Origin: Podarcis filfolensis
Lineage: Eukaryota
DNA: 64,000 nucleotides
Strand: one strand, 5' to 3'
NCBI GenBank assembly: GCA_964270895.1
Contig: OZ185435.1
Part shown: one piece after another, positions 3,141 to 49,215 of the stretch
Numbering within the stretch: the first letter of the stretch is position 1
Layout of the letters: the number at the start of each line of letters is the position of its first letter
Notes under the pieces: generated by a model
What the model was told of the DNA's origin: nothing
What the model saw: the letters and a program-made list of their open reading frames with translations, nothing else
The model's database searches: none
Position numbers and translations under genes: made by a program

Positions 3141-6006
3141 GCTTTAGTTGAATGCTATGTTCAAATGTACCAACCTATTTTTTAATATTTTATAATTCAG
3201 GTTTTTTTGTTCAGACATTGTTTTATGAAGAAAAACTTCATACACCTGCCATTTAATATGCTCTTTTATCTAGTTTTTAAATTCTAAAACTGGTGTATTA
3301 TATGGATTAAATAAAGAAGAAATGGAATTTTACCTGCTCATCATAAAACTACGTTTAACTTAAGGAAAGGATCTTCCAGCAAGAGTGCAGATTATGTAGG
3401 TATCCAATAAAAAAACCCATACAAAACAAAGTTTCAACAAGGCCTTTTAAGGGGGGCTACATCATCTACAGAAGACTCAAACCATCCAATTGACCATACG
3501 TAGAATGATGAAGCAGTCTATATATAGGTGGTGGCCAGGAGAAATCGATGATTCCATTTCTGTCCCCTTGACAAGTCAGACCTGTGTGTTCACTCTGCCC
3601 GTAATTACAAAAGTTGCAAAAACTGTTGTGTGAAAAATATGGTTTTTGACAATTGGGTTTTCTTAGTGCAAAACATGGAGGTTTTAGCACTCTAGTGTCT
3701 TGTTGCTCCATGCAAAAAAATGACTGCTACTCTTAAAGTTAAAACCATAGATAATAATCTCATTACCTAAAATTGAGAAGGATTTTAGGATTTTGTCTCA
3801 ATCTGTGCTTACTGAAAGACAAATCCATTTTCCTGCAGTTGTTAAAACTACTAAATGTTGCATACAAGCCAGATGAGATCCCTCACCTTTTGATGGTGGC
3901 AGACATTCTACTTGGTCGTGTGCCCCCCCCAAAAAAATCTTCCAAGTTTACTCTCAAAGTAGAGAACTTTCTTTATAGGAATTTCACTGAGCCATGAACA
4001 GAGTGGCCAATTTGACAGTACTGTATAGTGTCAAATTGACCCATTTAATATCTTAAATAACCCAAAGTTTGTCCACTAATATGTGACTCTTGACACAACA
4101 CACATCATGTAACCATGCCATGGGGTGGAATTTCCTTCCTTTAGAAGCTGGACATAGTCCAAGCCCCAGCATCTCCCAGGGCAGCCAAAAGAGCTTCCTT
4201 GGCTTTGAGCAGAGGGGGCTAATCCGTTTTGGCTGGTGGGCTGCATTCACTCCTGACCAACCCTTTGAAGATAGTGTGTCAATAGTAGGTGCGGCCACCC
4301 CCGAGTCTTGCATCAACACAAAAAGGCTGACAGTCCCCGCTCCTCAGCTGGTCCACGTCTCTTGTGCTTTTCTCGGTTTAATGCAGAACCTCAGCAAATC
4401 CTGAAGGTCGGAGCACCCTCAGCAACTCTGGATTTTGCATTGAGGGTCATGCAGTACTGAAGTCTATGAAAATTGGGGGCCTTGCCTTACACAAATGGAA
4501 AGCAATTTCTTCCGGCATAAAACCACCACTGTATGCAGCTCTGCGCTCCGAATGATCATGATTCAGCTTGACAGTATGTCAGTACACTGTGCTCTTCAGG
4601 ACTACAGTCCATTGTGTGTGGTTGCATCACTACTTGGTGCTACAATTCTGTAGTTAAATGCTGAGACAGAAGAACTAAATCATTCGAAATAGTTACACCT
4701 GAAGCCAAGGGTAGCAGCAGGGTGGGCCAGCATCCCACAAACTGACCAATGAACCAAGGTGAAGTATGTGAGCCAATTTGGGGGGGGGGGGAGTCAAAAT
4801 CCTAGCTTGCTTTCTTCCTGAACTAATGAAGAGTCAATTCTTTCGTGGTACTCTGAATCAAGGCCAGCACCTAGTAATTGGTCCTATAGACCTGAGGGGA
4901 TTTATACTTTGAACAGCAGCCACCTATGCTGCATGGTGTACAGCAGGGAGTTTCAGAAGTAGTTAATGACACCTTATGAGGGTCAGTTCTTCAAGCAACA
5001 GTAAATAATGCCACTGTAATACCAAGCCCGTAACATTTGTTCATGCATCTCTTGGATTGTCCTAGTGAGGTAGAAGACCAGGACATGAAGACTTGAAAGC
5101 AATACATGAACTTTACAGTAGGGTTTTCTGTATCTAGTAGAAACTACATTTTCTCTATACACTTGGTTTGAAATTTGATTAAACCGATCAGCTTTTGTAA
5201 CAAAAAGCCAGTTTTCATGTTGCAGGGCATGACCACAGCTATGCATCCTTTTAGTTGGCTGTTGCATACCTGCATTAAAACTTTAGTGCAGCAATCCTCA
5301 AATATTTTTGATGTTGCTATATAGATGAGGACCAAATTAGGTGTAACAGCAAAGATGCAAACCGATTTACTGGGTGAGGGAAGCAGAGAGCATGTTGCCA
5401 AGGGGTAAAGGTCTATTATCCAGAGAGAAAGCTGGCATTAATCATGAAAAAATAATGGCGCTTTGGGATGTGGTCTCCTTAAATAATACATTTCTCTTGC
5501 TACATTATGCCTAACCTCATGCAACTGTCACTCATAAAAAATTAAAGAGAAAAATGTTGCTATGTAGCTAAGTTTATTTTCTGTGTTTGATAACCCTCGA
5601 GGCAGTAACATATATCAGATCGCTCTCTCTAGGCATAATGGTTAGCTGCAAGCGGGAAAGAAATCGAGGCTGCAGTCCATGGCACTTTTACTAGGGAAGA
5701 TTGAACTCAGGTTTACTTCTAAGTCTTAAACATGCTTAGAATTCCACAGCATATATTAGAATGCTACAACATTGCAAGGGACCACAAGGCTATCCTAGCC
5801 AACCCCTTTCCCTAGACATATTCTACTATGGAGCAAACTCGACACAAATTAAATTCTGCAGTCCAAGCTGCACTCGGTTGCATGCAGAAAACAGTCTTAT
5901 TCAATTTTTGAAATAAAAAAGGGAAAGCCACCCCTACCCCCATTGTCTCTTATTAATGGAATGGCATGTCTGCATTGTTTTGGGGATATCTACCCTTTAT
6001 ACCAAC

Positions 6007-47368: not shown

Positions 47369-47539
<171 letters not shown>

Positions 47540-48076
47540 TGAAAGTCATCTGTTGGGCAGCTTTTCAGTGCATTCCAATATGCTGCGTGCAACAGGCACA
47601 TTTTGCTCCATGCTTTCGAATATGCCCTTTACGGCTCCCCAAAAAAATCAGTGCATTTTGGCTTGTCAGCTTAATTCTTCTGGGTAATACTTTGATCAAT
47701 AATCAGGTTCGGGCTCTGATTGATTAGAAGCACAAGTAGTGCAGCTTTCCAGAATGCCAGATCATGTTGCTAGATAATCCACATTGTATATGGATGTTGC
47801 TGTCTTTAAATAAAAGGCTTTGAGTACAAAAGCATTCTTTTAAAAACAAAACCAAGAAGTTCATCTGCCATGATAAAAAGTACCCAGTCTGGCTATGCCT
47901 TTGACAAAGGCTTTGCAGTTGCTTATCATAGTTTTGTGTGTTTTGAAATGGTGTTTCTGAAGGCTGAGAATCTGGGAAACATCCAGGTCCTTTTCCCTTG
48001 GCTTTAAAAAAACAGTGGGAGGTGTGCCTGGTAAATTGTGCCTTTCGTTTTTTAAATCAAGGTTGATTTTTGCTGA

Positions 48077-48388
<312 letters not shown>

Positions 48389-48693
48389 TGAATAATTGGC
48401 AGGTTTACAGTGGCTGCTGCAGGGAACAGAAATAAATGGTTCACGAAGACTCCTGCAACACTTATTGCATGTTGCAGATAAAAGGCATAAATTTTTAGGG
48501 CTCAATTTCTGCTTCAAATTATCAAATCTCATCTTGATTCAAGGAGAACATTCTCAGAAAGAAACTCTCCATTCAGTGGATTCCATTGTGGCCAAATCTC
48601 AGTCTTGGAACCAAATTTCTTTCTCCTATTCCCAGCAGCAGCCTTCAGTGTTTGTTTTTGCATGCTGAACCCTTTTTTCCCTCCCCTTAATAG

Positions 48694-48889
48694 CTGTGAG
48701 CTCTATAAAGAAGCAGCACCTTATTGAAGTAAGAGCTATGGGCAACCCACCTGCGGCAGTAAAACTGGCTTTAGAATCCATCTGTCTCCTGTTGGGTGAG
48801 GAGACGAATGACTGGAAAAAGATCAGGCCAGTTATTCTGAAAGATAATTTCATCACCAGCATTGTCAACTTTAATATTGAAGACATGAG
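48694..48889 (+). CDS. DYNC1H1: DYNC1H1 exon 52b, tandem paralogous MTBD exon (putative mutually exclusive alternative)
   Basis: ccttttttccctccccttaatag|(A)[64 protein letters not shown](S)|gtattt, 196 nt, same phases as 52a, no stops or indels. Usage itself is inferred. Confidence 0.85.
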
Positions 48890-48966
48890 GTATTTGTGTT
48901 CTATAGCTTTGCTTACCAAGGTGATGGGATAACTTGCAGGCTTGGCAATTGCATGCTGGATGGTAA

Positions 48967-49215
<249 letters not shown>

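Follow-up and report, generated by a model that had tools for sequence, protein, structure and literature searches.

Nearly all transport towards the minus end is the work of cytoplasmic dynein-1, and the locus described here raises the question of whether the heavy chain gene of this motor holds, in the microtubule-binding domain (MTBD), a second exon that can take the place of the first. The DNA analysed, referred to below as the window, is one strand of 64,000 nucleotides from Podarcis filfolensis (GenBank assembly GCA_964270895.1, contig OZ185435.1), on whose + strand lies a portion of a vertebrate gene for the heavy chain of cytoplasmic dynein-1 (DYNC1H1). The favoured reading, which we hold with good but not complete confidence, is that the tandem exons 52a and 52b encode the same piece of the MTBD, that they go back to a duplication before the teleost-tetrapod split, that both are constrained, and that 52b would be a restricted alternative. 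Under this reading, 52a would be the default exon, and use of 52b would be limited to certain cell types or stages. The number 52 is the label given to the exon in a preliminary description of this DNA and was taken over as is. The coordinates of the exons and of the intronic elements discussed below are collected in Table 1.

Table 1. Exons and intronic elements of the DYNC1H1 region, numbered from the first nucleotide of the window
Feature	Position	Strand	Evidence or remark
Exon 51 (upstream constitutive)	47414..47534	+	RNA joints 47534 to 48192 in four runs; conceptual translation
Exon 52a (canonical, 196 nt)	48192..48387	+	Used by all spliced reads and contigs
Duplex 5' arm	48395..48452	+	Predicted to pair with 48600-48669; starts 8 nt past the 52a donor; core helix 48412-48429
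Duplex 3' arm	48600..48669	+	25-94 nt before the 52b acceptor; core helix 48626-48643
TGCATG, within the 3' arm	48659-48664	+	Inside an intron block conserved from frog to lizard
Exon 52b (alternative, 196 nt)	48694..48889	+	Open frame, phases as in 52a; orthologues, omega, clade
TGCATG	48950..48955	+	62 nt past the 52b donor; similar in L012 (71 nt), other loci without it: weak conservation
Exon 53 (downstream constitutive)	49035..49152	+	RNA joints 48387 to 49035; conceptual translation

On direct reading, 52a and 52b are each preceded by a pyrimidine tract and AG and followed by GT. Each contains 64 whole codons free of stops, and the 3' end of exon 51 contributes one base of a split codon. 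The two exons are adjacent, equal in length, identical in phase and bounded by intact splice sites, which is the make-up of a tandem mutually exclusive pair. Their alignment has an E value of 1e-30, so chance is ruled out as the cause of their likeness, and a tblastn search of the whole 64-kb window gave no third copy of the exon. A script was used to compare the two copies codon by codon. The same residue is encoded at 46 of the 64 codons (18 residues differ), 44 of these 46 codons are degenerate, and 29 of the 44 carry a synonymous difference. The counts that the preliminary description had obtained by hand were reproduced exactly, as was its statement that synonymous sites are near saturation: by the method of Nei and Gojobori, pS is 0.80 and pN 0.17, the saturation limit being 0.75. 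Identity between the copies is 39% at third positions, 69% over all nucleotides and 72% over residues. The 19-residue core (columns 17-35), described earlier as fully conserved, is identical in 52a and 52b, and the unchanged length and intact splice sites were likewise borne out by reading of the sequence.

The protein encoded by 52a is 100% identical over 64 residues to positions 3296-3359 of solved mammalian DYNC1H1 chains. That of 52b scores 90-95 bits against the mammalian chains and aligns to the same residues, 3296-3359, and the domain PF12777 (MT) is recorded (precomputed) on P0121, a fish gene model that holds both exons. Sequence match and conserved core together assign 52b to the MTBD of a dynein-1 heavy chain and, judged from these alignments, each exon encodes the same 65-residue piece of that domain from helix H1 onward. 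The stretch after H1, up to residue 3359, is taken here to be H2-H4, and exon 53 presumably encodes the remainder of the MTBD, including helix H6. The placement of alignment columns on helices and loops, including that of H3 within the exon, is assumed on the basis of the published structures. The MTBD is built of six short helices at the tubulin intradimer interface, of which H1, H3 and H6 are needed for high affinity (PMC6629372). Helix H1 carries K3298/K3299 in mouse numbering (PMC4987762, PMC6629372), and run length and speed scale with changes of charge in the domain (PMC4987762).

Net charge over the exon is 0 in all 16 full-length 52b sequences and +1 for 52a. Fixed differences separate the two: 52b has S in place of K just ahead of H1, E in place of S in the H2-H3 loop, and K in place of Q in H3. 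Inclusion of 52b would provide the dynein foot with one unit less of net positive charge in addition to these fixed changes, and a foot so altered would be expected to differ in microtubule affinity, run length or speed. As a natural pair of MTBD variants, 52a and 52b could be used to probe how charge and residues of H1 and H3 bear on these three properties. MTBD-like sequence was also seen in three proteins of 746-937 residues (P0132, P0161 and P0189), which contain five tandem MTBD-like repeats and lack a dynein motor. In their repeat unit, a hydrophobic helix and an 'LG' turn come after a conserved NPP motif, an unusual architecture.

The distribution of the pair was examined by a word search with the 52b peptide, which gave many short genomic ORFs, and the contigs were then fetched. 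The ORFs fall in three classes, namely 52b, 52a (often 64/64 identical) and non-vertebrate dyneins. Beyond the lizard, 52b orthologues are present in eight other genomic sequences. A tandem arrangement of 52a followed by 52b, with AG/GT sites and open frames, was found in L001/L002, L003, L004, L007, L008, L009 and L012, and the short contigs L010 and L011 contain 52b alone. Of these sources, L004-L006 come from sequencing of the frog Litoria verreauxii alpina (PMC12171712), and L008 (GenBank contig PIJE02022797.1) has a gene model labelled Coryphaenoides rupestris, a teleost. Divergence and tree position suggest that L001, L003, L007, L009, L010 and L012 are teleost or reptile sequences. At every locus examined the AG, the GT and the frame of 52b are kept, the 52b exon of L012 being 199 nt long through one extra codon. 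All 34 distinct 52b-type ORFs keep the frame and read into an AG|GTA donor with no stop or frameshift.

That the pair is common to lizard, frog and teleost indicates that the 52a/52b duplication is older than the teleost-tetrapod split, which dates to about 430 million years ago, and the vertebrate stem would most simply be the place of its origin. The ancient duplication proposed in the preliminary description is upheld by 52b orthologues, intact in frame and splice sites, which occur in at least six sequences besides those of the frog and the teleost. In species range, 52b extends beyond a single species, since frog and teleost carry it. A separate animal lineage was observed to have its own tandem pair of 196-nt MTBD exons (L013:3083-3278 and L013:3656-3851; also L014-L017), with AG/GT sites and the same phases, the copies being 78% and 62% identical to 52a. 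Neither L013 copy groups with the vertebrate 52b clade, from which it follows that duplication of this exon may be recurrent. Two further 52a ORFs, P0214 and P0301, continue into a GC-rich intron without 52b-like sequence and may be mammalian, possibly human.

Pairwise dN/dS was 0.03-0.26 among nine 52b orthologues and 0-0.05 among eight 52a orthologues. Under a Goldman-Yang codon model in IQ-TREE, omega for 52b over nine orthologues was 0.119 (2dlnL 153, p 4e-35 against omega 1), and omega for 52a was 0.014. Between the lizard and L001, its nearest relative in the set, 52b is 92%, 52a 91% and the flanking introns about 60% identical. These estimates indicate that 52b is under strong purifying selection at the protein level, in agreement with the preliminary description, and dN/dS across the 52b orthologues lies far below 1. 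By the same estimates, 52a has been almost frozen since the duplication, and 52b has evolved about eight times faster while still being strongly constrained.

We reject the proposal that 52b is a dead copy, whether recent or in decay, or that its likeness to 52a has been maintained by gene conversion. Little speaks for it beyond the missing spliced 52b reads in the RNA data described below, the lower pS between 52a and 52b in L008, at 0.44, and the extra substitutions and added codon of the L012 exon. It is opposed by the saturation of synonymous divergence between the copies in most species. Decay is further contradicted by the orthologues in frog, teleost and lizard, by an omega far below 1 and by the count of stops and frameshifts, which is zero in 34 sequences. 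The 52a and 52b clades are reciprocally monophyletic, and these separate clades, together with within-species pS values of 0.44-0.80 (lowest in L008), imply that gene conversion is not behind the likeness. Assignment of 52b to the class of pseudoexons was also considered and was rejected, since the 34 sequences are without stops, frameshifts or lost splice sites and omega is 0.119.

Some loci depart from the common pattern. In the nearest relative of the lizard in the set, two separate runs (L001:1333-1524 and L002:1231-1422) show three residue changes near the end of the otherwise invariant 52a, with 52b intact; constraint may have begun to move from one copy to the other. The 52b orthologue at L012:1166-1360 has its extra codon in the H2-H3 loop, shows a Cys-to-Ser change in the core and gives the highest dN/dS against the lizard, 0.26. 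The extra codon presumably sits where the flap of axonemal dyneins is located. Data on polymorphism from ten fish contigs were set aside because retrieval by exact protein identity biases the sample.

Phylogenetic trees were computed from 133 rows, and the AU test was performed on 56 rows. The 52b sequences form one clade with support 99/97, and the 52a sequences form another with support 98/93. Within the 52b clade the frog, lizard and teleost sequences lie in separate groups, as vertical descent predicts. Both clades are placed in an unresolved animal polytomy in the tree of 64 columns. A tree in which 52a and 52b were held together was better than the free search by 5.07 log-likelihood units (p-AU 0.605), and because this constrained tree is the better one, a single duplication in the vertebrate lineage would be the best reading of the tree, short of proof.

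To avoid bias, the outgroups were taken irrespective of their likeness to 52a, and the sequences were split into an animal-type and a fungal-type set, both labels being putative. At the 17 diagnostic columns, those at which the consensus of 52a and that of 52b disagree, the majority state of the animal-type outgroup is that of 52a at 11, that of 52b at 3 and neither at 3, and 76 of the 86 animal-type outgroup sequences are closer to 52a. A clade of full-length fungal-type dyneins is about equally far from 52a and 52b. Scores against Dictyostelium chains in the PDB were 55.4 and 59.1 bits for 52b and 54.2 and 58.4 bits for 52a, and yeast chains in the PDB gave slightly lower scores for 52b than for 52a. 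We conclude from these comparisons that 52a is the more conservative of the two copies and that 52b is derived.

The opposite polarity, in which 52b is pre-vertebrate and keeps a Dictyostelium- or fungal-type ancestral state and 52a is derived, is improbable on this evidence. It can draw on four states that 52b shares with the fungal-type full-length dyneins (S at column 2, D at 50, S at 55 and E at 62) and on the free tree, which places 52b apart from 52a. The better likelihood of the tree that holds the two together argues against it, as do the proximity of most animal-type outgroups to 52a, the majority states that favour 52a over 52b, and PDB bit scores that reveal no Dictyostelium affinity; in addition, 64 columns give low resolution. 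The suggestion in the preliminary description that 52b preserves ancestral states resembling those of Dictyostelium is therefore not supported, given nearly equal Dictyostelium scores, lower yeast scores and outgroup states that, of the 17 columns, favour 52a at 11 but 52b at 3. Nor does the tree of both exons with outgroups lend it support, since the best tree found keeps 52a and 52b together. The four shared fungal-type states were probably the source of that suggestion.

The reading frame restricts which messages can be productive. The remainder of 196 on division by three is 1, and so only messages that contain exactly one of the pair are productive. Replacement of 52a by 52b keeps the frame, inclusion of both exons leads to a stop at codon 11 of 52b, and inclusion of neither leads to a stop at codon 7 of exon 53. 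Both stops are located upstream of later junctions, and wrong combinations would for that reason be degraded by the usual rule.

RNA evidence over positions 47400-49200 consisted of two raw RNA-seq runs from a close relative and two contig sets, all of unstated tissue. Joints from 51 to 52a and from 52a to 53 are abundant in all four data sets. No joint from 51 to 52b or from 52b to 53 appeared at the listing threshold of at least three reads in these four sets, the tissues of which are unstated. About two reads in X23 lie inside 52b, with zero in the introns, and in X24 and X7 coverage extends over the entire interval between 52a and 53, at about 2-10% of the depth on exons, through intron retention. 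In the latter two sets, positions 48388-49034 are retained at low depth and the intron before 52a is uncovered (X24) or covered in traces (X7), and it may follow that removal of the region holding 52b is slow or regulated. A 246-nt contig in X1 terminates exactly at the last base of 52b. This end at the 52b donor, read as a branch between spliced and unspliced paths in the assembly graph, is a hint of 52b splicing and the sole sign of it. The frog RNA-type contigs L005 and L006 open on precisely the last 30 nt of 52a and cross the 52b donor unbroken; the 30-nt start is the signature of a branch at the 52a donor.

Among the collected 52b-type ORFs there was no spliced 52b protein fragment. A search of representatives of all proteins did not return a full-length vertebrate heavy chain, and clustering at 90% would hide 52b isoforms within 52a clusters. 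In these four data sets 52b is at most a minor form. A 171-residue DYNC1H1-like protein of Mus pahari (P0302), in which 52a is joined directly to the next exons and several substitutions are present, looks like a retrocopy fragment of a 52a message.

These observations also bear on the idea that 52b is never translated into a working motor and is conserved as a regulatory RNA element, or as a poison exon through which nonsense-mediated decay adjusts the output of DYNC1H1. It is favoured by the exclusive use of 52a joints with low-level retention of the intron between 52a and 53, by the early stop that follows double inclusion, and by a flanking intron that is unusually conserved and structured. 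We regard it as unlikely nevertheless, since selection acts on the protein (synonymous sites saturated, omega 0.119), since frame, length and phases are kept in 34 sequences with a whole codon (L012) as the sole change in length, and since conservation of 46 residues out of 64 in a folded domain would serve no purpose in a poison exon. In the strict sense of an exon that brings a stop by its own inclusion, 52b is not a poison exon, as the stop arises with double inclusion only. The favoured reading, that of a translated alternative to 52a, would account for the constraint on the protein, and restriction to particular cell types or stages is part of it.

For the intron between 52a and 52b, an inverted-repeat scan, RNAalifold and duplex folding concur in predicting a long, imperfect duplex, in which the segment from +8 to +65 past the 52a donor pairs with that from -94 to -25 ahead of the 52b acceptor. 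RNAalifold gives 27 pairs, 3 of which are compensatory. The stability of the duplex was matched by none of 300 shuffles in each of four tetrapod loci, and folding gave no comparable duplex in four fish loci. All five tetrapod loci have a GCATG motif 34-43 nt ahead of the 52b acceptor, and the three teleost-type loci lack it there. In tetrapods, the predicted duplex would join both ends of the intron and cover the likely branch-point region of 52b. On the basis of four sequences, it may in this way keep 52b silent by default and hinder the joining of 52a to 52b.

Mutually exclusive choice between exons is brought about elsewhere by intronic RNA pairing, as with the docking and selector sites of Dscam, or by steric hindrance, as with exons 2/3 of alpha-tropomyosin. 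The dynein pair resembles these systems in having a conserved base-paired intronic element between the competing exons and in that the frame rule and decay would purge wrong combinations. It differs from Dscam, in which one docking site serves several selectors, because both arms of the dynein duplex lie in the 52a-52b intron and pair with each other, and because the duplex is absent from the fish loci. Among dyneins, one mutually exclusive exon was described in the cytoplasmic dynein heavy chain of Schistosoma mansoni (Pillmann et al. 2011, PMC3228551), and Kollmar 2016 (PMC5100056), who cites the Schistosoma DHC1 exon, mentions splice forms within the motor domains of dyneins. That case is also a tandem pair of homologous exons of equal length with split codons in the motor region, judged mutually exclusive. 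It concerns a flatworm, however, and the part of the motor affected is unstated in the paper, whereas the lizard pair is a vertebrate one, lies in the MTBD and is common to fish, frog and lizard.

In the muscle myosin heavy chain of arthropods (PMC3228551), a swap of homologous exons in the motor domain similarly yields kinetically different motors. Myosin belongs to another motor family, with many exon clusters and well-documented tissue use, whereas dynein has here a single cluster of two exons that is known from sequence. Mouse and human DYNC1H1 have, according to reviews, a single isoform and 78 exons, and the variety of dynein-1 is attributed in these species to accessory chains and adaptors rather than to the heavy chain (PMC3824068). 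The mammalian protein is 100% identical to that of 52a over residues 3296-3359, with the same domain and function, but the reviews describe no heavy-chain splice variants, whereas the lizard locus has a second MTBD exon that could be selected.

Many vertebrates are probably able to build a second version of the dynein-1 motor. A conserved alternative exon for the helices that contact the microtubule would mean that track binding is regulated in many vertebrates. A further-reaching reading is that a single gene supplies fish, amphibians and reptiles with two dynein-1 motors that differ mechanically, by means of a pair more than 400 million years old, that the choice is made in tetrapods by the duplex and GCATG, and that mammals have lost the second foot; taken as a whole, this is less likely than not, and we put it forward as a tentative proposal. 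If the two-motor part of it is true, work on dynein in non-mammals that carry the pair covers a mixture of motors absent from mouse and human cells. If mammals are truly without 52b, the date of its loss would show when this regulation became dispensable.

Full-text searches of the literature yielded no description of an MTBD exon pair in vertebrates, and automatic gene models may well contain the pair already. In one of them, the L008 fish model P0121, 52a and 52b are read in series through a shifted acceptor and the model then continues into the intron, which is an annotation error produced by the exon pair.
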